Shown: piece by piece, positions 23,869 to 62,045 of the stretch
Numbering within the stretch: position 1 is the first letter of the stretch
Layout of the letters: every line of letters begins with the position of its first letter
Virus record (IMG/VR): IMGVR_UViG_3300024336_000005
Location: 62,001-126,000 of that record
Direction: 5' to 3' (one strand)
DNA length: 64,000 nucleotides
Notes under the pieces: model-generated
Databases searched by the model: none
Told to the model about the DNA's origin: nothing
What the model saw: the letters and a program-made list of their open reading frames with translations, nothing else
Made by a program: the position numbers and the translations under genes

Positions 23869-24487
23869 GGGGGTGTCAGGTTTCGACAGGGTATAAATAG
23901 GAAGCGATAGCAGGTCCCGCTAAGAACGGCAGCGGGTTAGAAAGCAAGTTCAAATTGTAAACGGCAACGTAAACAACATGGCGGTGGCTGCCTGATAGCT
24001 TCCCTTCGGGGAATCTATTGGTAGTGCATACCCTCTAGTCTCTGAGTTAGACCTCTTTAAGTAAGGGCTAGAGTACGTGAAATTGAGGAATCGGACAAAG
24101 AAAAGTCCAATGTCGAGTGGATGGAAACTGAAGCTTCGTAGCTGCTTGCAGATACGAGATTGGGAACGTGGTAACACGTACAAGGATAAGCCAAACTAGT
24201 TGCGGAAGACCTCCTTGATGGTTAAGAGCTACCCGCTGACAGTAAACTCATCAAAGGAAATCGTATTACTCTTTTGATGAACCTATAAGTACGAACCTCC
24301 CTGGTTGTTTCTACCATGAGGGGAGTGAGAAAACAGAGCAAGGCGCAGCTTGGGGCCGACAGGAGTTAGCCTCAAGTGGAGTGGCAAGTGCAAATCCTCT
24401 CATTTGTTTTCATCTAAATGAAACTAAACCTGTAGAAGTTGTATTTCGAAAATGTTCTGGACGGGAGTTCAATTCTCCCCACCTCCA
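23869..24487 (+). ncRNA. ssrA: tmRNA (unusually long, 619 nt)
   Basis: 5' GGGGGTGTCAGGTTTCGAC, tag ORF 23957-23995 (A)VNGNVNNMAVAA*, 3' CTAAACCTGTAG...GGACGGGAGTTCAATTCTCCCCACCTCCA. Confidence 0.9.
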
Positions 24488-24808
24488 CATTTCTTCACGC
24501 TGAGTGGCCGTGCTGATTGACGGCGGCTGAAAGCAAACGCAATAAACTACTCGCGCGCTTGGGTTAACCAACCGGAATCAAACAGGATACTGTTCGCGCG
24601 AAATCGGTTAGCCAGCCCTAATAGGTAGTGAGCGTTTGTAGAAAGTGTCTTAGACGGTATGTCAGGGAAGGTACAACCTGGACTCCGGATAGGCGTGAGG
24701 TGGTTCAGGGTTGTAGGTAAGAGAACGGAAAAGGTAATCTGAAAACGCCTTTCTGAAACCCATAAACCTAACAAAGGGGAGCCCGAGTGGTGCAAGCAGC
24801 CCCCAGAG

Positions 24809-29225: not shown

Positions 29226-29421
29226 TAGGAGTTGAGATCCAGTTCCCGTCGGGGTGCCTACTGGTTAAACAAAAAGGCTCGATGAGTAGACTTGTGTCTG
29301 GAGAGACTCCGCCGGTTCGAGGCAGACGGTGCTCAAAGCCTCCCTTTTCTTGGAGAGTGAGATGGTTAAACTAATAGGGCATGTCCCTGAGACAAAGAGG
29401 GGTCCCTTTAGGCGCAATACA

Positions 29422-30105
29422 ATGGAAGCTAAGGTAATGGAAACTCGACAGGAACGTCATGAGAGACATCTCAGGACGATGAGAGCGTATTTGGCAGGAG
29501 GGGAGAATTTCCTGGCCGCCAAGGCTCTCCAATTTGCAAAGAATCTAATGACAGGACTAAGGAAGGATGGGGAAACTCCAGCCTTCCACCATCCCCTGTC
29601 GGTGGCTCGCTACTTACGAGCTCACCGTCGTAGTCTTATTTATGGAGAGGAGACCATTGCGGCTGCCTTTCTTCATGATATCCTCGAAGACTTTGGTGAT
29701 ACTGTCACTAGAGAGCAACTTAGAGACCTGTTTGGGGAAAGAGTAGCGACTGCCGTATGGGCTCTCAGCAAGAAGAGCAACGGAACGTCAAAGACTCCCG
29801 ATACCTACTTCATGGGCATTGCATCTAATGAGATTGCATCTGTTGTGAAGGCTGTAGATCGATTGCACAATCTCCACACCATGGAGGGCGTGTTCTCTGT
29901 TGAGAAGCAATTGGACTACATCAAAGAAGCAAGAGATAGATTTATCCCCATGCTTATCGAAGCAGGAGATAGGTTTCCCGAACAGTTTGATGTCTATGAA
30001 AACCTCAAGATGAACTTGAGGCTTCAAACCATCCCGATGGAACGACTGTGCGAAGCTTTGATGAGGCTAAAAGATGAAGTTCGAAGCGGTGATTGTCGAG
30101 GGTGA
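29422..30105 (+). CDS. RelA/SpoT-type HD-domain hydrolase (small alarmone hydrolase-like)
   Basis: HPLSVA, AAFLHDILED, VKAVDRLHNLHTM. Confidence 0.8.
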   Translation: MEAKVMETRQERHERHLRTMRAYLAGGENFLAAKALQFAKNLMTGLRKDGETPAFHHPLSVARYLRAHRRSLIYGEETIAAAFLHDILEDFGDTVTREQLRDLFGERVATAVWALSKKSNGTSKTPDTYFMGIASNEIASVVKAVDRLHNLHTMEGVFSVEKQLDYIKEARDRFIPMLIEAGDRFPEQFDVYENLKMNLRLQTIPMERLCEALMRLKDEVRSGDCRG

Positions 30106-32836: not shown

Positions 32837-33616
32837 ATGAAACCCACTTATATTGTTGGAGACGTTCATGGATGTCTCCGAGAGCTTCAGACACTTCTTT
32901 CTCTTATCTTTCAAAAGATTGGTGCCAATCCAGGGACTATTGTCTTTGTTGGTGATCTGATTGACAAGGGGCCTGATAGCCTCGGATGCCTTCGTCAGGT
33001 CAAAGACCTACAGAAGTATCCGATGGGGATTGAAGTCGTCTTCGTCATCGGCAACCATGAGGATAAGTTGATCCGTTGGTTGCAGCACGAGCAGAAGATT
33101 GATCTGGGTCTTGCTGTAACTAATCCCATTAAGGCATTGCCTGAGTGGGATGCAGCCATGAGGACATGGGGGCTCAAGCAAGGTGGCCTTAGGTGGCTAC
33201 GTTCCTGTCCTATGTCTTGGTCTTCCGGTAATGGTAAGTACCATGTAGTCCATGCTGGGATTGAGCCCAAAAGGAAAGCAATTCCAGTTTGCCCCTGGCT
33301 TGAGGCCAAGGGCAAAGACAAGACTGTCTTCTTTACTCGGTATGTGAACCCTGAGAAGGGTAAGATGGTAGCACTTGGTCAGGAGGTTTTTCCTCGTGAC
33401 AAGTGGTGGGGTGAGCTTTATGATGGCCGTTTTGGTACTGTCATCTATGGACATCAGCCCTTTGATGAAGTTCGACGAGATGCCCATGCAGTAGGCATTG
33501 ATACCTCTTGTGTTTATGGAGGCTGCCTGACTGCATATGATCCAACTACTGGAGAGACTCTTGAGGTGAAGGCCTTTGATGTCTATTCAGAGAGAATGAA
33601 AGACTACCCTTCATGA
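32837..33616 (+). CDS. calcineurin-like metallophosphoesterase (ApaH/PrpE/Pnkp type)
   Basis: GDVHG, GDLIDKG, GNHE, VHAG, YGH, IDTSCVYGG. Confidence 0.9.
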   Translation: MKPTYIVGDVHGCLRELQTLLSLIFQKIGANPGTIVFVGDLIDKGPDSLGCLRQVKDLQKYPMGIEVVFVIGNHEDKLIRWLQHEQKIDLGLAVTNPIKALPEWDAAMRTWGLKQGGLRWLRSCPMSWSSGNGKYHVVHAGIEPKRKAIPVCPWLEAKGKDKTVFFTRYVNPEKGKMVALGQEVFPRDKWWGELYDGRFGTVIYGHQPFDEVRRDAHAVGIDTSCVYGGCLTAYDPTTGETLEVKAFDVYSERMKDYPS

Positions 33617-33652: not shown

Positions 33653-34711
33653 ATGAGTGATTATCCAGATGGAACCATTATTGTAGGTCTCCAGGATGGA
33701 GACGAAAGCAAGGGAAAGGTGGCGGCGGCTCTTTGTTCGCTACCGCAAGTGACCCATTGTGTTCGCTATAGTGGTGGACAGAATGCAGGCCATGTTTTCT
33801 ACAAGGATGGCCTACAGGTTGTCACTCATATCATTCCCTCTGGGATTGTATATGGGAAGGTCTCGGTGATTGGTCCTGGCTGCGCCTTCTCTGAGAAGGG
33901 CTTCTGGGCTGAGCTAGAAGACATTTGTGATGCACTGGGGGAGACCATGTTGAATCTCTCTCGCTTGATCAAGATCTCCCCTGCTGCTCATATCGTCCAG
34001 GACAAGCACATCGTTTTGGATGAGGCGACAGACAAGATTGGATCTACCAAGAGAGGGATCGCCCCAGTCTATGCCGATAAGGCTATGAGGACGGGCATCC
34101 GAGCCGAGAGCATTCCAAGCCTAAAGCCTTTCTTGTGGGATACGACTAAGCTCAATGACCCAAAGAATGTCATCGTATTTGAAGGGGCTCAAGGCTTTGG
34201 CCTTGATCCTGATGTAGGAGATTATCCCTATATCACCAGCTCCTCCTCTCTCCCTGGTGCGATCAACAATGTTGGTGTGCCCATCTGGGCAATCAATAAG
34301 ATTGTTGGAGTTGCAAAGCTCTATGCGACCTATGTTGGGACCAAGGAATTCGAGCCAGATCTAGAGATTTTCTCAAAGCTTCGTGAGCTCGGAGGGGAGT
34401 ATGGCTCGACCACAGGCCGTCCTCGACAGTGCAACTGGTTGAATCTTGATACTCTCATCACTGCTATTCGAACCTGTGGTTGTACTACGGTCGTCTTCAG
34501 CAAGTGCGACATCATTGAACAGCTTGGCGTTTTCAAGTTGATTGATGGTGGTACAGTTCGAGAGTTCGGGAATATGGCTGGCATGATTGCTCACATTAAG
34601 CGAGAGCTTAAGGAGGAGGCACCAAGTACAAGTCTAATCTTTAGTGGCAGTCAATACACAGTTGAAGATGACTATGGCCATCTTGCTGAAGAGCCGATGG
34701 GAGAGATTTGA
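33653..34711 (+). CDS. purA: adenylosuccinate synthetase (short form)
   Basis: GDESKGK, GGQNAGH, GSTKRGI, FEGAQG, YPYITSS, EYGSTTGRPR. Confidence 0.9.
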   Translation: MSDYPDGTIIVGLQDGDESKGKVAAALCSLPQVTHCVRYSGGQNAGHVFYKDGLQVVTHIIPSGIVYGKVSVIGPGCAFSEKGFWAELEDICDALGETMLNLSRLIKISPAAHIVQDKHIVLDEATDKIGSTKRGIAPVYADKAMRTGIRAESIPSLKPFLWDTTKLNDPKNVIVFEGAQGFGLDPDVGDYPYITSSSSLPGAINNVGVPIWAINKIVGVAKLYATYVGTKEFEPDLEIFSKLRELGGEYGSTTGRPRQCNWLNLDTLITAIRTCGCTTVVFSKCDIIEQLGVFKLIDGGTVREFGNMAGMIAHIKRELKEEAPSTSLIFSGSQYTVEDDYGHLAEEPMGEI

Positions 34712-34784: not shown

Positions 34785-36146
34785 ATGTACCAAGCAATTG
34801 TTGCCAACATTCACACCCGTCCACATCCGGGAGCTGATCGAATTCAGCTAGGAACTGTATGTGGCCATCAGGTTGTATGCGGGCTTGACATTGCTGATGG
34901 TACTCTCGGTGTGTTCTTTCCTTGCGATGGCCAGCTAAGTCATGACTTCTGTGTGGCCAATGATGAGTACCCTCGGCTTGATGAACAGGGGAAGAAGGTC
35001 GGTGGCGGATTCATCAATCCTAAGAACCGTCGCGTAAAGGCACAAAGCTTTCGTGGTGAAAAGTCGGATGGCTACTGGGTTCCAATGGATAAGCTCATTA
35101 AGTGGGCAAATCATGTTTGGCGCGAGGATGACAAGGGAGACCATGTCCTCTTGTCCAACCGTGTGCAGAGCCTTGTAGAAGGTGACACCTTTGATTCCGT
35201 TGGCGATGTGCCTTTGTGTAACAAGTATGTAACTGAGAAGACCCTTAAGGCTCTTCAGAATCAGGCCAAGCAGGCTCGCAAGACTCATACTCAGTTCGCT
35301 CAGCATATTGATACCAAGCAGTTCCGATACAACATTGGAAACATCCCGGAGGGTTCCATTGTATGGATATCTGAAAAGCTTCACGGTACTAGCGGTCGCT
35401 ATGGGTACGTTCAAGCTCTTCGTGAGCTCGGTGGCCGTTTTAATGCTTTTGTTCGCAGGGCTTTTGATTGGTGCGCTGATAAGCTTGGTCTTGATGTAAG
35501 CCCTAAGTATGAACATGTTATGGGCTCACGAAGGGTTGAGCTCTCTGCTCAGTCAGAAGGGTTTTACGGCTCGATAGATTTCCGTGCAAATGTAGCAAAC
35601 AAGTTGAAGGGAAATCTCCTCAAGGGTGAGTGCATTTATGGAGAGCTAGTGGGTTGGACTGGTCCTGATTCTTTGATCATGGGCCGCCACTCAACCAAGA
35701 AGCTCGGCAAGGAGCTTCGCAAGCAGTACGGAGAAGAGGTCACCTATACTTATGGACAGCCAAACGGTTGTTCTGAGTTCTTCGTTTATCGAATCACTCG
35801 TGTTGGCCCAGATGGTCAGACGATTGAGCTCGGTGAGCGTGAGATGCGGGCAAGGGCGAGGGTCCTCGGCTTCAAGACTCCAGAGCTCTTTGCGGGGCCG
35901 ATGGTAGTTCACGACTATGCTGATGATAAGTGGGTCGATGGTGGCAAGACGCTCATGCAGGTCGTGGAAGCCTACCTAAATGGACCATCGATTGAAGACT
36001 CACGACATCCTCGAGAGGGCGTCGTGATTAGGGTTGACAGGCCTGACGGGACTACCATCTGGCTCAAGGACAAGAACCATCCGTTCAAGGTAATGGAGGG
36101 TATCGCTAAGGATTCCGGCGAAGCAGACATGGAAGAAAGCTCATGA
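34785..36146 (+). CDS. ATP-dependent RNA ligase, Rnl2/DRB0094-like with N-terminal OB fold
   Basis: HPGADRI, EKLHGTS (motif I), YGELVG, FFVYRI, REGVVIR, LKDKN. Confidence 0.85.
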   Translation: MYQAIVANIHTRPHPGADRIQLGTVCGHQVVCGLDIADGTLGVFFPCDGQLSHDFCVANDEYPRLDEQGKKVGGGFINPKNRRVKAQSFRGEKSDGYWVPMDKLIKWANHVWREDDKGDHVLLSNRVQSLVEGDTFDSVGDVPLCNKYVTEKTLKALQNQAKQARKTHTQFAQHIDTKQFRYNIGNIPEGSIVWISEKLHGTSGRYGYVQALRELGGRFNAFVRRAFDWCADKLGLDVSPKYEHVMGSRRVELSAQSEGFYGSIDFRANVANKLKGNLLKGECIYGELVGWTGPDSLIMGRHSTKKLGKELRKQYGEEVTYTYGQPNGCSEFFVYRITRVGPDGQTIELGEREMRARARVLGFKTPELFAGPMVVHDYADDKWVDGGKTLMQVVEAYLNGPSIEDSRHPREGVVIRVDRPDGTTIWLKDKNHPFKVMEGIAKDSGEADMEESS

Positions 36147-40772: not shown

Positions 40773-42416
40773 ATGAACTACGGTAAGACTGTTAGCAACG
40801 CTATCAACAATGGTCCAGTTTCTCAGCCTATCATCGGTAGGCCCGAGATGGTAAAGAACAGCACTGAGGGCTTTGTCTTCAACACCACTTCTGAGGCAGC
40901 GCTTGAGCGCTTCCTCATTCTTGGCACTGAAGGCGGCACTTACTATGCCAGCGAGAGCCGAGCTACAGTTGATGCGGCAAAGAATGTCATCGAGATGGCT
41001 GTTGCTGGCAACGTAGATGTAGTCAGTACCATCATCAAGGTCGCTACTGCTCGTCCCTCTCGTGCGCCAAAGATGGAGCCTTCCTTGTTTGCTCTTGCAG
41101 TTTGTACCGCAAAGGGCACCCCCGAGGTAAAAGCTAAGGCGCTCAGCGCGCTGAGCGCGGTTTGCCGTATCCCCACTCATCTGTTTACCTTTCTTCAGGC
41201 CCACAAGGATCTGGGAGGCAAGACCGGTGGGCGCAGCTTCCAGCGAGCCCTACAGAATTGGTATCTTGAGAAGGATCCCTCTAAGCTGGCTTATCAGGTT
41301 GTGAAGTATCAGGGGAGGAATGGCTGGACTCACCGTGATGTTCTTCGGCTTGCCCGCCCTAAGGCTCAGACCCCTGAGCAGAACTCTATTTTGAGTTGGG
41401 CTGTGAATGGTTCGCTGCCTCTGGCAGTAAGTTCTGAAGCGGGTGCTTATCTTGTGGCGGCGAATGAGCTGCTGCGAGGGGAGCCGACGAAGCAGCGTGC
41501 AATCAACTTGATTGAGTCTCATGGGTTCACCCATGAGATGGTTCCGACTAAGCTTCAGAAGGACCCTGATATCTGGGCAGCTTTGCTTCCCCGCATGCCT
41601 ATCAATGCAATGGTTCGCAACCTTGGTCGGATGACTGCCAATGGTCTGATTGTTCCATTCAGTGCCACAACTCAGAGCGTGGTGGAGAAGCTTGAGAATG
41701 TGGATGCCCTTCGCAAGAGCCGCATCCATCCGCTCAACGTTTACGTGGCCTTGCGTACCTATCAGCAGGGCAAGGGCACTCGAGGTTCGTTGACTTGGCG
41801 TCCTGATGCTCAGATCTTGAGCGCACTAGAAGGAGCATTCTACAATGCTTTCGGGAATGTAGAACCGACTGGTAAGCGCTTCATGGTGGGCCTGGATGTA
41901 AGCGGCAGCATGGGTGGATTCTATGGCTACGGCTATAACAGTACTGTGAACCAGACTGGCCTTATGGGGATTCCTGGGTTTACGCCTTATGAGGCAGAAA
42001 CCCTTATGTCCCTTTTGGTTGCAAAGACTGAGAAGCAGACCTTCTTTGGTGGGTTTTCAGACAACTTCACTCCCCTTGCTATCAACTCCCGTGATAACAT
42101 GAGCTCGGCTCTTCAGAAGATCCGATCACTCCGCATGGGTTCCACTAGGATTGCTGCTCCGATGGAGTATGCCACCAAGAACAGGATTCCGGTGGATTGC
42201 TTCCAGATCTACACCGACAATGAAGTGAACATGGGCGGACATCCTTGTCAGACCCTTGAGAAGTATCGTCAGGCTACTGGCATCAATGCGGCCATGGTCG
42301 TATGCGCTATGACCTCTACGAATTTCACTGTGGCCGACCCGAAGGATCCGAAGCAGCTTGATGTTGTTGGATTTGACACGGCAGTGCCAGCTTTGATTCG
42401 ACAGCTTTTGGTGTAA
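40773..42416 (+). CDS. rsr: Ro60/Rsr TROVE-domain RNA-binding protein
   Basis: LERFLILGTEGGTYY, KYQGRNGWTHRDVLRLARP, VRNLGRMT, IHP, vWA MIDAS DVSGSM, YTDNE, DVVGFD. Confidence 0.97.
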   Translation: MNYGKTVSNAINNGPVSQPIIGRPEMVKNSTEGFVFNTTSEAALERFLILGTEGGTYYASESRATVDAAKNVIEMAVAGNVDVVSTIIKVATARPSRAPKMEPSLFALAVCTAKGTPEVKAKALSALSAVCRIPTHLFTFLQAHKDLGGKTGGRSFQRALQNWYLEKDPSKLAYQVVKYQGRNGWTHRDVLRLARPKAQTPEQNSILSWAVNGSLPLAVSSEAGAYLVAANELLRGEPTKQRAINLIESHGFTHEMVPTKLQKDPDIWAALLPRMPINAMVRNLGRMTANGLIVPFSATTQSVVEKLENVDALRKSRIHPLNVYVALRTYQQGKGTRGSLTWRPDAQILSALEGAFYNAFGNVEPTGKRFMVGLDVSGSMGGFYGYGYNSTVNQTGLMGIPGFTPYEAETLMSLLVAKTEKQTFFGGFSDNFTPLAINSRDNMSSALQKIRSLRMGSTRIAAPMEYATKNRIPVDCFQIYTDNEVNMGGHPCQTLEKYRQATGINAAMVVCAMTSTNFTVADPKDPKQLDVVGFDTAVPALIRQLLV

Positions 42417-42886: not shown

Positions 42887-43080
42887 AAGAACTGATGTAA
42901 GAAGATTATCACAACTATAACGGCCCTAAGGTAGCGAGAGTCGGGCGACCGATGTTCCGCAATATAGACTCCTAATTCTCCAGTAGAATAAGAGTACGTG
43001 CTCAATGCCGTATCCCACTTTGTGGAGCGGTAATAGCGGCAGGGGTTCAACCCCTATTTCTTCTTCAACTCTTTGTTCTT
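42887..43080 (+). ncRNA. putative Y RNA 1
   Basis: 5' AAGAACTGA pairs with 3' TTGTTCTT; AAGAAGA/TCTTCTT upper stem. Confidence 0.7.
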
Positions 43081-43090
43081 GAGATTCAAA

Positions 43091-43816
43091 ATGAAAATAC
43101 AATATGTAAGTGATGTTCACACTGAATTTCACAAAGATTTGGGAATTCAGTGGGCTAAAACGATTCCTGTTGAAGGGGATGTTTTAGTTCTTGCTGGTGA
43201 TATTGTTATTTTCGAGAACCTCATTCAGGTCTTGACAATCATTTGTAATCGCTTTTCGAAGGTGGTATTTGTTAGCGGCAATCATGAGTATTACCGTTCA
43301 GATCGTAAAACGATTCATAACAAACTGCAAAAGATTGCAAATAAGTTTGACAATTTCCATCATTTAAATAATAATGTAGTTGTCATTGAGGATATACGCT
43401 TCGTCGGTACGACACTTTGGTGGAGCGCCCCTCCTTATGCTTGGCTAGCCATCATGAATGGCTTGAACGACTTTAGTCAGATACTTGGGTATCGCAAATG
43501 GGTCAGCCAGGCAAACATAAAAGCCAAACAGTTTCTACAAGAGAATGTGCGAGAAGGTGATATTGTTATCACCCATCATGCACCAACTTGGGAGGCGCAC
43601 CGACGGCGACAGTTGGGTAATGGAGTAATGCATTTTGCTTATTACAACAACTTAGATGATTTGATCCTTGATAACAAACCAAAATATTGGATTTATGGAC
43701 ACACGCACCATGAAGATCAATTTTCTATAGGGGATACACTTTTAGTGAATTCCCCGCATGATTATTGTCCTTATGAGGGCGGTTGGCCGAAGAAATTCGG
43801 CCTTTTAGATGTCTAG
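43091..43816 (+). CDS. metallophosphoesterase
   Basis: SDVH, LAGDI, GNHE, THHAP, YGHTH; AT-rich. Confidence 0.88.
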   Translation: MKIQYVSDVHTEFHKDLGIQWAKTIPVEGDVLVLAGDIVIFENLIQVLTIICNRFSKVVFVSGNHEYYRSDRKTIHNKLQKIANKFDNFHHLNNNVVVIEDIRFVGTTLWWSAPPYAWLAIMNGLNDFSQILGYRKWVSQANIKAKQFLQENVREGDIVITHHAPTWEAHRRRQLGNGVMHFAYYNNLDDLILDNKPKYWIYGHTHHEDQFSIGDTLLVNSPHDYCPYEGGWPKKFGLLDV

Positions 43817-50780: not shown

Positions 50781-50868
50781 CTAGCGAGCGGGCGGTGGAC
50801 GCCCAACCGTGCTGTACAGCGGTGGTGCTTTGATGCACAACTGGGTTCGATTCCTAGGCGCTAGACCA
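50781..50868 (+). tRNA. Tyr-like class II tRNA with 8-nt anticodon loop
   Basis: ACCGT-GCTGTACA-GCGGT, GTGC..GCAC arm, 5-bp D stem, ACCA. Confidence 0.65.
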
Positions 50869-52129: not shown

Positions 52130-52215
52130 GGCTTGGTGGTGAAACTGGTAGACGCACCAGGCTCAAACCCTGGCGGGGTGAAAGCTCCGTGTCGGTTCGA
52201 TTCCGACCCAAGTCA
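52130..52215 (+). tRNA. trnL: tRNA-Leu(CAA)
   Basis: CCAGG-CTCAAAC-CCTGG, variable arm. Confidence 0.92.
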
Positions 52216-52218
52216 CAC

Positions 52219-52638
52219 ATGAAAGAAATTGAAATGCATATTGATAAGCAATTCTTAGTAAAGCGTAAGGCCTGCCAGCCACAAGTAGATTTATTTGTTG
52301 AGGCTTTTGGGGAGAAGGCTTCCGTTGAGGTGACTACAGAGAACCTCAAGAAAGCCTTCGCTGTTGGACTTGATGTTAGATGGCTGACTGGTCAGTTTAC
52401 TGAGCTCAAGCCCCTGCTAACAGGAAAGTTTGAGTCTTCTGAGATTGTAATCTACTTCCAAGATGGCTTGTTTCATCGTGAAGATGGTCCTGCCATCCAA
52501 TGGAAGGATGGCAATGGAAAGTTTTGGTATCGTCATGGAAAGTCCCACAGGACAGATGGTCCTGCAAGGATGACCCCATGGGGGGACAGCTGGTGGGTTG
52601 ATGGGGTTAAGCAACCCGCTCCCACTGATAAGACTTAA
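52219..52638 (+). CDS. hypothetical protein with HRxDGPA repeats
   Basis: FHREDGPAI, SHRTDGPAR; start corrected. Confidence 0.8.
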   Translation: MKEIEMHIDKQFLVKRKACQPQVDLFVEAFGEKASVEVTTENLKKAFAVGLDVRWLTGQFTELKPLLTGKFESSEIVIYFQDGLFHREDGPAIQWKDGNGKFWYRHGKSHRTDGPARMTPWGDSWWVDGVKQPAPTDKT

Positions 52639-52705
52639 AGCTGAGAGGAAAGCCCCATATTCTAGGAAGCCTTGACAGTTCGGAGAGACGAACGCTTTAT
52701 CTTAT

Positions 52706-53039
52706 CCAGGAGGTGGGCTTAGAAGCAGCCATCCTTTAAAGAGTGGGCATAGATGAAGCTTAACCGATTGATCTTATCTAATCATGACACGGATAGGAGA
52801 AGCTTAAGTTAGCACCTCTCAATAAATTCGAATTGGACCCAGGTTGGCTTCCTGGTTGGCCTTTACGAGAGAGTCTTGTAAGAAAGCGGGAAGAGACTTA
52901 GTCAGTCTTATAAAGAGAGCGAAACCGAACGCAACTCTTTGTTCTATTTTAGAACTGGTGTGAATCCTATGACGGGATGTATTTGGTTAACAAACGAGAG
53001 AATTGACTCTGCCCTCCTTTTAGCGTAATAGCACACTGG
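52706..53039 (+). ncRNA. 23S rRNA H43-H44 (uL11-binding GTPase centre) mimic with 278-nt insertion
   Basis: CCAGGAGGTGGGCTTAGAAGCAGCCATCCTTTAAAGAGT [insert 52745-53022] GCGTAATAGCACACTGG; no other rRNA sequence nearby. Confidence 0.85.
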
Positions 53040-53051
53040 ATAGATAACTTT

Positions 53052-53137
53052 GGCCGGGTGGTGGAACGGTATTCACACTGCGCTTAGAACGCAGCGCCCT
53101 TACGGGATTGAGAGTTCGAATCTCTCCTCGGCTACCA
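53052..53137 (+). tRNA. trnL: tRNA-Leu(UAG)
   Basis: CTGCG-CTTAGAA-CGCAG, ACCA. Confidence 0.93.
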
Positions 53138-59164: not shown

Positions 59165-59297
59165 TCTGGTGTCGCTTAATGGTAGAGCAGGCGGCTGTGG
59201 TTTATTGCAAGGGCATTACAAGGGTCTTAACCTTGGTAGGCCTCATAACCGCCCGGGGGAAACTCCATTGTAGGTTCGACTCCTACCACCAGAGCCA
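59165..59297 (+). tRNA. interrupted tRNA (Asn-like) with 47-nt insert in anticodon loop and long variable arm
   Basis: TCTGGTG/CACCAGA, G73, CCA; GGCGG-CTGT[59199-59245]TAA-CCGCC. Confidence 0.75.
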
Positions 59298-60491: not shown

Positions 60492-62045
60492 ATGGGATCA
60501 TCTAACGTTACGTGTGGTATTACTCATGCTTCAATTGGTGGAGGAGATGAGTGTGTATTAATTCCTCTTCATGCTTCGAAGAAGCCTGAAGATCCTTTTA
60601 ATTATACTCCTTATGCAGCACTCCCTGTTGTTATCCGAGGTAGGTATGATGACTACGGAAGGATTGAGGACATCGTAGAGACTGCAGGCACTAAGGTTCT
60701 TGAAAAAGAATTTGGGATGCCTATTAAGAGGTTTGCAGACCTCCTCGTTGAGGGGAGAGATGATTACATTGGTGAGTTTGGTACACTGATGAGCCCAGAT
60801 CTTGTGGACCTATTGAAAGACTATAGTCCCTTTGATCAGGAGCATCTCAAAGCTTGCGGCTTTGAGCCTTATGAGCTAGACCGAGAGGCTTACCTTTCGC
60901 CTGAGCTGGTAGACCAGGAGAGCTGGTGGAGTCATCCCCGATTGGAAAAGATTCTTGTACGCCTTAGGTCTTGGGTCTCCGGAGGGGAAACGCTGCCAGA
61001 AAAACTATGGAACAGTTACCAGATTTCCTCACCCTGGCGCAACCATGAAGACGAACGTCCCTGCTTGACCAGTCTAACGATTGCTTGGGAGAGTGGTCAT
61101 AAGGTGATGGGACTTCTTAACAACTTGTATCAAAATACAGGCATCCATCTGGCCTATAAGGAGAAGAACTCTGGTGTTTTTCATAGGCTGAATGAGATGG
61201 ACTACGTTTGGGTACATGCAACAGCCTTTGATGGACTTTCTAAGCCCCTCCCACATGAGGGGCAGGGGGGCTCCTGGTGGGGCGAAGACAGTTGGATCAG
61301 TGGAATTAAGCCTGACAGCTTAGAGATGCTCGGCTTTGTTTATGACAAAGAAGCCTCTGAAAAGAGAAGGGCTGTCAAGCCCAAGGGGCCGACGGAAAAG
61401 CATCGTTGGTGGATGATCTATCGTCATCCTGAATGTACAACGCATGTTGCTGTAAGCGATGGCAGATGGAGTCACATCATTGAAGAGGGTGATAACACCT
61501 ATCATGGCACGATGAACCTATTCAGCCTTAGGCTTACTCAATTTGTTCAGGCATGGAAGAAGGCTACAAAGAAACGCCTTGTTGTTCCTAAGGAAGAATA
61601 TTCTCTCTGTTCTTATAGAAAGAACTTCCGTCACGCTCGCGCTGCCGTCTTAGCCTTTGAAAAGGACCAGGCAGAGGAGCTTGAATTTTACGAAAGCTCT
61701 GGCCTTGATGAACAAGCCATCGCTCTTAAGAGAATGAGGGCGGAGTATAACAGCATCTGGAGACGCGATAACATTCGAGAGTATCCTTCAATTTCCTTCG
61801 AGCCAGAGTGGCCACGTTGGTCATTCATGAAGGACTTGTTTGCTGGTGTGATTAAGGATGGCACCCTCGAAGATGAGTGTGTGCAACTACAGTGGCTGCG
61901 AGCGAACCTTGGGATGCTCGCACATCCTCTTAGGCCGATGCCCTATAATGGACCTCAGTGTGGTGACTACCACATGCTTAAGGCCTTTGGTGATATCATT
62001 GTAGAGATTGCAGAAGACAAGCTAAAAGAAAGAGATGACTGGTAA
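60492..62045 (+). CDS. hypothetical protein
   Basis: 517-codon ORF. Confidence 0.85.
   Translation: MGSSNVTCGITHASIGGGDECVLIPLHASKKPEDPFNYTPYAALPVVIRGRYDDYGRIEDIVETAGTKVLEKEFGMPIKRFADLLVEGRDDYIGEFGTLMSPDLVDLLKDYSPFDQEHLKACGFEPYELDREAYLSPELVDQESWWSHPRLEKILVRLRSWVSGGETLPEKLWNSYQISSPWRNHEDERPCLTSLTIAWESGHKVMGLLNNLYQNTGIHLAYKEKNSGVFHRLNEMDYVWVHATAFDGLSKPLPHEGQGGSWWGEDSWISGIKPDSLEMLGFVYDKEASEKRRAVKPKGPTEKHRWWMIYRHPECTTHVAVSDGRWSHIIEEGDNTYHGTMNLFSLRLTQFVQAWKKATKKRLVVPKEEYSLCSYRKNFRHARAAVLAFEKDQAEELEFYESSGLDEQAIALKRMRAEYNSIWRRDNIREYPSISFEPEWPRWSFMKDLFAGVIKDGTLEDECVQLQWLRANLGMLAHPLRPMPYNGPQCGDYHMLKAFGDIIVEIAEDKLKERDDW

Follow-up and report, generated by a model that had tools for sequence, protein, structure and literature searches.

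Why would a large phage keep, beside its tRNA genes, a near copy of one of the functional centres of the bacterial ribosome? The question is raised by a stretch of 64,000 nucleotides (hereafter the window) that covers positions 62,001 to 126,000 of the IMG/VR virus record IMGVR_UViG_3300024336_000005, and that contains at 52697-53047, on the + strand, a self-closed sequence resembling the GTPase-associated centre (GAC) of 23S rRNA, i.e. helices 42 to 44 (H42-H44, E. coli 1051-1108). We found that this element belongs to a family of phage sequences which share one design and vary in concert at its paired positions, and comparison of its members indicates that it is almost certainly a real structured RNA with the GAC fold. 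The reading that we prefer, to which we give a probability of roughly 0.45, is that this RNA would be matured from a tRNA transcript and would act as a decoy by binding the ribosomal protein uL11.

Architecture of the GAC-like element

The rRNA positions given here follow the E. coli numbering, for which the 23S rRNA of Salmonella LT2 (L280) served as the reference. Once an insert of 278 nt is removed, 50 of the 56 positions from 1052 to 1107 are identical to the Salmonella sequence, the mismatches falling at 1058, 1061, 1080, 1089, 1090 and 1101. The element, all of it on the + strand, starts with the 5′ strand of a closing helix (52697..52709), which pairs with 53036-53047 through 12 bp and one bulged U; this strand replaces the top of H42 and, apart from CCAG, is not rRNA-like. 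The H43 equivalent follows (1056-1081, at 52710..52735), with the loop UUAGAAGCA in which A1067 corresponds to 52721. Next come the 1082-1086 mini-hairpin (UUAAA, 52736..52740) and the GAGU of positions 1087-1090, which is the 5′ side of lower H44 (52741..52744), both placed by the mapping to the Salmonella 23S rRNA. The 278-nt extra arm is inserted between U1090 and G1091 (52745..53022); its GGGCA (52745-52749) pairs with TGCCC (53010-53014), and the 8-nt linker UCCUUUUA (53015..53022) comes next, as read from the sequence. Upper H44 and its GUAAUA loop (1091-1103) then occupy 53023..53035, where A1095 is 53027 and an A stands at 1101 in place of the U of rRNA; this segment reads GCGUAAUAGCACA and fits the 3′ half of H44 in the family, GCGUARNAGC followed by A or G at 1101. 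The 3′ strand of the closing helix (53036..53047) is complementary to 52697-52709, and a tRNA-Leu(UAG) gene, called by both ARAGORN and Rfam (53052..53137, +), starts 4 nt past it.

Most of what the original prediction said about this place is borne out. The GAC-like sequence that it quoted is present and matches H43-H44, the equivalents of A1067 and A1095 are kept, the insert closed by GGGCA/TGCCC sits at the 1090/1091 junction, and neither flank is rRNA, the upstream neighbour being a protein-coding open reading frame (ORF) and the downstream one the tRNA-Leu(UAG). The comparison with models of the large-subunit (LSU) rRNA that it proposed recognised the 5′ half, including H43, which matches Rfam LSU positions 1163-1246 with 21 bits and an E-value of 4.8e-4 (701-nt search), below the gathering score. 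An Rfam scan of the whole 64-kb window found no LSU segment besides this 5′ half, and the 14-mer GCTTAGAAGCAGCC occurs exactly once in the window. The same cannot be said of the H42-like motif GGAAGCCTTGACAG (52666-52679, +), which had been taken as part of the element: it does resemble GGAAGGCCCAGACAG, the 5′ strand of H42 in 23S rRNA, but we did not count it in, because no sequence downstream is complementary to it and none of the other family members has an equivalent, the true closing helix being the one at 52697-52709/53036-53047. Also outside the element is a small hairpin, GTTCG-GAGAGA-CGAAC (52678-52693, +), which is a weak terminator-like site only.

A true ribosomal GAC, or a fragment of 23S rRNA, is ruled out as the identity of the element by the arm at 1090/1091, which interrupts H44, and by the ORF and tRNA at its flanks. 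Small stand-alone genes homologous to pieces of LSU rRNA do exist where rRNAs are fragmented into separate small RNAs, for example in apicomplexan mitochondria (PMC10948144). Those pieces, however, assemble into a ribosome, whereas the phage RNA is closed on itself, lacks sequence that would pair with the rest of the 23S rRNA, and coexists with an intact host GAC.

A phage family with covarying structure and a single origin

How widespread is this design? A blastn search of GenBank phages located the H43-like segment in completely sequenced cultured phages, in gaps that bear no annotation. The cultured phages whose complete genomes have the element infect Pseudomonas, Aeromonas, Cronobacter, Pectobacterium, Serratia, Erwinia, Yersinia, Xanthomonas, Acinetobacter and Paenibacillus. 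In the four genomes that we read (Pseudomonas UNO-G1W1 and pf16, Aeromonas 4_4572 and Cronobacter GAP32) the design is identical, with a closing helix, H43, AAAGAGU, an insert, GCGUA-N-AGC and again the closing helix. An exact pattern for the H43 half matched at least 49 contigs of IMG/VR with 36 distinct sequences, the window's own 204-kb contig among them. The 49 listed matches all carry an insert of 62-313 nt at 1090/1091, and no rRNA-like contiguous copy, which the pattern would have matched, is found among them. A second pattern, made of 18 nt of the 3′ half and the linker, gave at least 120 further IMG/VR contigs, and by the covariance model a complete member is present in about 95 of the first 100 new loci. 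These two exact-pattern scans were the only ones used, and they recovered at least 136 distinct family sequences from IMG/VR phage contigs; the extra arm lies at U1090/G1091 in all 136 unique members.

When applied to bacterial and archaeal genome contigs, the 18-nt pattern matched mostly by chance within coding sequence. About 20 true members were found there, on contigs of metagenome-assembled genomes that are of phage-like size, and again in dense tRNA arrays (up to 25 tRNAs in 8 kb), for which reason a cellular origin was rejected. The family thus looks phage-specific from the contigs that carry it, and its distribution among tRNA-rich phages is patchy. A known Rfam RNA family was likewise rejected as the identity of the element by gathering-score and E-value scans: in the window and the four relatives, Rfam 15 reported tRNAs, a tmRNA and the partial LSU match, and no family model.

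The structure itself can be judged from covariation. A GAC-like structure drawn by hand was tested against column shuffles, using 37 aligned members with short arms (alignment A1). Paired cells amount to 90.7%, versus 67.7% in the shuffles, none of 500 shuffles reaching the observed values, and controls in which the 3′ partner was slid by 1-3 columns gave 34-52%. Changes on both sides occur in 19 of the 25 pairs, including double changes in all nine pairs of the closing helix. The helix at the base of the arm covaries as well (100% of cells are paired at 55-191 and 56-190, by 3-4 types of pair), as do 1057-1081, 1058-1080 and 1082-1086, the last of these appearing as U-A, C-G and A-U. These three pairs are also those that covary in rRNA.

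A covariance model built from A1 (R1) recognised members that lie outside its training set. Its scores are 119 bits for Milchi, 117 for UNO-G1W1, 114 for pf16, 93 for 4_4572, 92 for GAP32 and 89.5 for XacN1; XbC2, Kaldavass, CBB and Serratia BF each reach 87-90 bits and fHe-Yen9-04 reaches 68, and there are partial matches in Paenibacillus Pd_22F (58.5 bits) and Acinetobacter ME3 (27.7 bits). The window copy, which was also left out of the 37 training sequences, scores 60.5 bits over its 5′ half (E 4.6e-20, from 52691) and 11.1 bits over its 3′ half, the match being split in two because the 278-nt arm exceeds the insert length of the model.

The claim of a free-standing, phage-encoded GAC mimic is borne out by more than 130 distinct phage sequences that share the self-closed design and show covariation, and by this token the element is under strong selection. 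The opposite view would be that the locus is an artefact or junk, i.e. an assembly chimera with host rRNA, which the original prediction itself had named as what would overturn it, or a captured rRNA fragment in decay. The rRNA-like halves are indeed short, and the first Rfam match is below the gathering score. However, presence in the complete genomes of many cultured phages, besides the metagenomic sequences, refutes a chimera, and neither compensatory changes nor derived characters that are shared by the members and absent from host rRNA are compatible with an artefact or with decay, so that we give this explanation virtually no credence.

Which nucleotides does the family keep? We assessed conservation on 72 unique full-length members fetched via the 3′ pattern, hence with unbiased 5′ halves. 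G1055, G1059, U1060, G1063, C1072, C1079, A1084, A1085, G1087, A1088, G1089 and U1090 are 100% invariant, and all of them are present in the window copy; at least 92% conservation is seen at G1062, C1064, U1066, A1069, G1071 (99%), A1077 and U1083. The pair U1060-A1088 is the one contacted by Gly130-Thr131 of uL11 (PMC2175356). Positions 1096 and 1097 vary freely. In the structures of the 58-nt GAC, G1071 and C1072 form base triples with G1091-C1100 and C1092-G1099, locking H43 against H44. All six nucleotides are constant in the family, the four on the 3′ side being in part imposed by the search patterns. Similarly, GCGUA and AGC with the next C (1091-1095, 1098-1100 and 1102) are identical in all 36 copies of set 1, a constancy that is partly ascertainment because the 3′-half search pattern fixed those positions. 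At 1101 the same set has A in 33 copies and G in 3, where rRNA has U. The linker, counted in unbiased cases, reads UUUG in 30 of 36, UUUA in 4 and UUCG in 2; that of the window ends in UUUA like those four set-1 members, but is longer.

The extra arm, the linker and the A or G at 1101 are features derived with respect to rRNA that are found in every member. So is the GAGU at 1087-1090, which occurs even in phages of Gammaproteobacteria, whose own rRNA has GAAA. Because GAGU, the arm and A1101 are common to all members whatever the host, the family has, on these shared characters, a single origin and does not result from repeated capture from hosts. When compared with the GAC of 23S rRNA as a whole, the phage RNA has a nearly identical H43, 1082-1086 hairpin and H44 loop, the same covarying pairs, and invariant nucleotides for the fold and the uL11 contact. 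It differs in that it stands alone, with a generic helix in the place of H42 to close it, in the obligatory arm and the linker, mostly UUUG, within H44, in the A or G at 1101, in the relaxation of 1065, 1067, 1068 and 1070, and in being encoded within tRNA arrays, not in an rRNA operon.

Several GenBank records place coding sequences (CDSs) for hypothetical proteins over the RNA, and the family corrects their annotation. Such CDSs are UNO-G1W1 CDS0126 (L001 1569-1676), Milchi CDS0161 (L287 1228-1359) and Kaldavass CDS0239 (L290 346-438); two of the three are on the opposite strand, and they are probably mis-annotations.

The extra arm

Arm length goes from 25 to ~370 nt, with a median of 132, and the shortest arms are 25-nt hairpins (L061, L082 and L137). 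Arms are unrelated between subfamilies. One common class has a conserved 3′ block with a 3-bp hairpin, a covarying stem and a tetraloop. The GAP32-like class is 82-90% identical across phages of Cronobacter, Xanthomonas, Erwinia, Pectobacterium and Serratia, with compensatory changes in 22 of 54 predicted pairs. In a few arms we noticed a sarcin-ricin-like hairpin (stem, AGUA, C, GNRA, G, GAA, stem) whose flanking stem covaries, at ~219-240 in L012, ~221-242 in L091, ~231-250 in L147 and possibly also in L266 (~265). A strict descriptor of this hairpin has 2 matches in 21.5 kb of arms versus 0.05 expected, which is effectively one lineage. Together with the GAC core, this predicted hairpin would imitate both halves of the binding site of the translation factors. 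As a general feature of the family, a sarcin-ricin mimic was rejected, since it is enriched in one small subfamily only; the window arm contains just the 8-mer UACGAGAG, without the flanking sarcin-ricin motif.

These arms suggest another explanation, in which the GAC-like core, with or without uL11, would be a stable, nuclease-resistant platform and the arm its working part, whether aptamer, antisense or second rRNA mimic, which the core would only present and protect. An arm that is obligatory and yet specific to each lineage leaves room for such a payload. In its favour are the absence of relationship between subfamilies over the whole range of lengths, the conservation and covariation within the GAP32-like lineage, the sarcin-ricin-like hairpin of one subfamily and the 3′ block with a covarying tetraloop hairpin common to another. 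Nevertheless, the shortest arms are plain hairpins of 25-45 nt without obvious payload, A1095 and most of 1065-1073 are strongly conserved, though mere stability would not need them, and we identified no target with complementarity to an arm. We therefore regard this explanation as unlikely.

The window arm has no relative by blastn among the ~290 fetched loci, contains none of the motifs that mark the arm classes above, and folds no better than shuffled sequence (z -1.08). A search for synteny through the neighbouring DUF7873 gene led to two distant phages, neither with the element nearby.

Could the arm be removed, as the original prediction implied in proposing a check for it? If the arm were an intron or an intervening sequence, self-splicing or RNase III would take it out and leave a precise copy of the 58-nt GAC, in one piece or perhaps two. 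At group I splice sites a U stands before the intron and a G at its end, and the same holds for the arm in most members; a helix always closes the arm, as it does the 23S intervening sequences that RNase III processes. The phage arm thus has in common with group I introns and intervening sequences of 23S rRNA a helix-closed insertion in a conserved rRNA helix, with boundaries that are mostly U|...G|. Unlike them, it has no ribozyme core, can be as short as 25 nt and is a constant, conserved part of an RNA that is not ribosomal. Models of group I and group II introns gave no match at E-values up to 10 in the window or up to 1 in the four relatives. Arms of 25-62 nt have nowhere near the length that a ribozyme core needs, and those of 25-45 nt cannot be self-splicing introns. 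In the window, the 5′ flank ends with U and the arm with A (...UUUUA|GCG), whereas most other members' arms end with G. Moreover, the UUUG linker and the change at 1101 are conserved parts of the mature design, and an arm-less copy is absent among the 49 listed pattern matches. A group I intron was rejected on the lack of a model match, the shortness of the arms, the terminal A of the window arm and the lack of any arm-less copy; a removable insert did not survive for want of members without an arm, and we find the interrupted-fragment explanation very improbable.

Two side observations concern the arm and its surroundings. A second helix-closed insertion is found in the 3′ strand of H43, after GCAGCCA (1077), in L059, L084, L096, L115, L116, L118, L136, L142 and L144. 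In the GAP32-like alignment (A3), RNAalifold pairs GCCA (1074-1077) with the UGGC formed by the last two linker bases, G1091 and C1092 (columns 28-31/231-234). In this model, the conserved UUUG linker could help to form another fold, in competition with H43 and H44.

Genomic context and a candidate role at the stalk base

The context of the element was analysed in 116 unique viral members. A tRNA gene lies within 100 nt of 54 of them and within 2 kb of 73, all 661 tRNAs found in member loci are on the strand of the element, and a spacing of 1-10 nt on one or both sides is common. Between the window element and the tRNA we found no promoter-like or convincing terminator-like site, and nothing beyond the expectation from shuffles. 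Such packing with tRNAs, without promoter or terminator, is what one would expect if the tRNA-processing machinery matured the RNA, which is probably co-transcribed and processed with the tRNAs. In an all-against-all clustering of 1,976 ORFs from the 116 loci no conserved neighbour emerged, the best family being present in 6 loci, which points to a universal host partner. One case to mention is XacN1, whose copy (L286 1183-1440) starts 5 nt after a gene annotated as a 2′-5′ RNA ligase (528-1178).

Other non-coding RNAs are known in or beside phage tRNA arrays, namely the species 1 and 2 RNAs of T4 (rnaC and rnaD), ROOL, GOLLD and Drum, which are co-oriented with the tRNAs and presumably matured by tRNA enzymes. 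The phage GAC-like RNA is unrelated to them in sequence and structure, and the Rfam families ROOL, GOLLD and Drum do not match it. T4 rnaC and rnaD were considered as distant members and rejected, as they score at most 8 bits with the family model on both strands, which is noise.

Location directly upstream of a tRNA, as in many loci, could also suit a cis-acting sensor, that is, a leader that binds uL11 or a thiopeptide and controls transcription or processing of the downstream tRNA or gene. Ribosomal-protein leaders (the L10 leader RF00557 and the L1, L20 and S15 leaders) are extra-ribosomal RNAs that imitate the rRNA site of a ribosomal protein, as this RNA would. But these leaders are cis-regulatory 5′ untranslated regions of cellular operons and mimic mostly the shape of the site, whereas the phage RNA is encoded in trans, closed on itself and copies rRNA nearly base for base. 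No ribosomal-protein gene adjoins the element in the window, and neither the window nor the four relatives gave an Rfam leader match. What lies downstream is not conserved either (tRNAs of any identity, small ORFs or nothing), no terminator or anti-terminator is conserved after the closing helix, and the many members with tRNAs on both sides at 1-10 nt fit an excised RNA. A cis-acting sensor has accordingly very little probability in our eyes.

We come back to the preferred reading, the uL11-binding decoy matured from a tRNA transcript. The GAC-like RNA would be transcribed together with the phage tRNA array and excised by the tRNA-processing enzymes, RNase P setting its 3′ end when it cleaves at the 5′ end of the downstream tRNA; the product would be a stable RNA, of ~350 nt for the window copy. 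Its architecture reproduces the domain that binds uL11 (H43, the 1082-1086 hairpin and H44) in a form closed on itself, with H44 converted to a three-way junction that bears the variable arm. The RNA would adopt the GAC tertiary structure and may bind host uL11 off the ribosome; to judge from the conserved contacts, we put this binding at slightly better than an even chance. The resulting particle would then serve as a decoy or sponge, either by withdrawing uL11 or by offering a false stalk base to the ligands of the true one, a role that we put forward tentatively and hold at clearly below even odds.

Two kinds of ligand come to mind, in line with the original prediction, which had suggested titration of uL11, the stalk or GTPase/RelA-type factors, or a decoy of rRNA-targeting toxins. 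The first is RelA with deacylated tRNA. Activation of RelA requires uL11 and the stalk base, and a decoy of both might prevent this activation and thus the stringent response. The window encodes, within its tRNA island, a RelA/SpoT-type (p)ppGpp hydrolase (small alarmone hydrolase) at 29329-30105 (+), which matches Pfam HD_4 (1.5e-14), SpoT/Rel in the PDB (1e-10) and the small alarmone hydrolase 6z3o (5e-8). Extra tRNAs flooding the cell, together with this hydrolase, suggest that the phage may have a motive to suppress RelA activation. Homologues of the hydrolase are found in 99 of 50,697 phage records, GAP32-like carriers of the RNA among them. The second kind would be toxins or enzymes directed at the GAC, which the decoy might divert. 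Such an enzyme exists: Tre23 ADP-ribosylates H44 at bases 1095-1098 (PMC8661411).

Several observations weigh against this reading. Only 84-89% of members keep the A at 1067, ~11-16% having G, C or U instead, and positions 1065, 1068 and 1070 are relaxed as well. A1067 is a contact of thiostrepton, EF-G and the N-domain of uL11. Its replacement argues against binding of EF-G or another factor, or of a thiopeptide, as the common selected function; because A1067 varies, the pattern of conservation in the family favours uL11 and the fold over the factor and thiostrepton face. The arm enters H44 beside G1091, a nucleotide of the tertiary packing, 1101 is changed, and lower H44 differs from rRNA. 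The window copy is itself atypical, with UCCUUUUA instead of UUUG as its linker and an arm without relatives or significant predicted stability. The co-occurrence of hydrolase and RNA is limited to two or three lineages, and since it is so confined it lends weak support to the RelA branch. Finally, the pool of free uL11 is small, and a uL11 sponge could hurt the phage's own translation.

The toxins may also be considered without uL11. The RNA would then be a decoy substrate or competitive inhibitor of toxins that recognise naked GAC RNA, such as Tre23-type ADP-ribosyltransferases, nucleases or N-glycosidases, in parallel with the phage tRNAs that counter tRNA-targeting defences. The bases modified by Tre23 lie in H44, the element sits within an island of translation-repair functions (26 tRNAs, tmRNA, RNA ligase, Ro60 and phosphoesterases), the XacN1 copy follows its RNA ligase gene, and the patchy distribution among tRNA-rich phages would suit a sporadic toxin. 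However, a stoichiometric decoy would counter a catalytic toxin poorly, 1096 and 1097, inside the Tre23 target, vary freely, and a design kept across very different hosts fits a universal partner better than a sporadic toxin. Nor do we know of any anti-phage system that targets the GAC. For these reasons a uL11-independent toxin decoy appears quite unlikely to us.

A more daring version of the uL11 decoy can be formulated from the same comparisons. Large phages would make an off-ribosome replica of the stalk base that recruits uL11 and, in some lineages, carries a sarcin-ricin-like hairpin, co-expressed stoichiometrically with the phage tRNAs, and this replica would blind RelA to uncharged tRNA or absorb the toxins of immune systems or competitors. 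Taken as a whole we consider it doubtful.

How new would such an RNA be? Mimics of tRNA are well known (tmRNA, Y RNAs and viral tRNA-like structures), as are the mimics of rRNA sites in ribosomal-protein leaders. Like the phage element, the Y RNAs, which go with Ro60, and tmRNA are phage-carried mimics of a translation RNA, and the phage of the window encodes Ro60 and a tmRNA; but these mimic tRNA, while the element mimics an rRNA domain. In full-text literature searches we found no description of a phage GAC-like RNA family, and to our knowledge no other case has been reported of a virus that encodes, in trans, a functional rRNA centre copied almost base for base, with insertions at a conserved site. 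If the uL11/GAC decoy is real, a viral mimic of a functional rRNA centre would be seen for the first time, and in its toxin-absorbing version the decoy would draw off toxins aimed at the one part of the ribosome that a phage cannot replace. Should the RNA bind uL11, it would represent a new viral route to interfere with translation control or with ribosome-directed immunity, and its members would amount to naturally occurring GAC variants in which an insertion is tolerated at one site, a resource for engineering RNA and for work on the uL11/thiostrepton site. The family is abundant and tractable, being present in cultured phages of several genera.

The tRNA island of the window comprises 26 tRNAs, on the + strand, and a tmRNA of 622 nt (23869-24490, +; Rfam 83.5 bits, E 6.8e-31). 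Around them, also on the + strand, are genes for a Ro60 homologue with TROVE and vWA domains (40773-42416), an RNA ligase (34785-36146), two metallophosphoesterases (32837-33616 and 43073-43816) and an adenylosuccinate synthetase (33653-34711). From these predicted functions, the island looks like an RNA-repair and quality-control toolkit. A distance of 10 kb separates the Ro60 gene from the GAC-like element, and in the family Ro60 does not recur beside the RNA.

Some minor features of the island deserve mention. The ORF just upstream of the element (52189-52638, +) has no Pfam or PHROG match and encodes repeated YxxDG..W..G motifs that look MORN-like by eye; its listed start overlaps the tRNA-Leu(CAA) gene at 52130-52216. 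The tmRNA, which ARAGORN did not report, has ~340 nt extra within its pseudoknot region. An Rfam tRNA match at 59165-59294 (+), not called by ARAGORN, is 130 nt long (42.2 bits) and holds ~55 extra nt, an intron or a large insertion. At 50781-50868 (+), ARAGORN called a tRNA whose enlarged loop contains an anticodon of four bases (tgta); its product may serve frameshifting or the decoding of quadruplets, or the gene may be degenerate.

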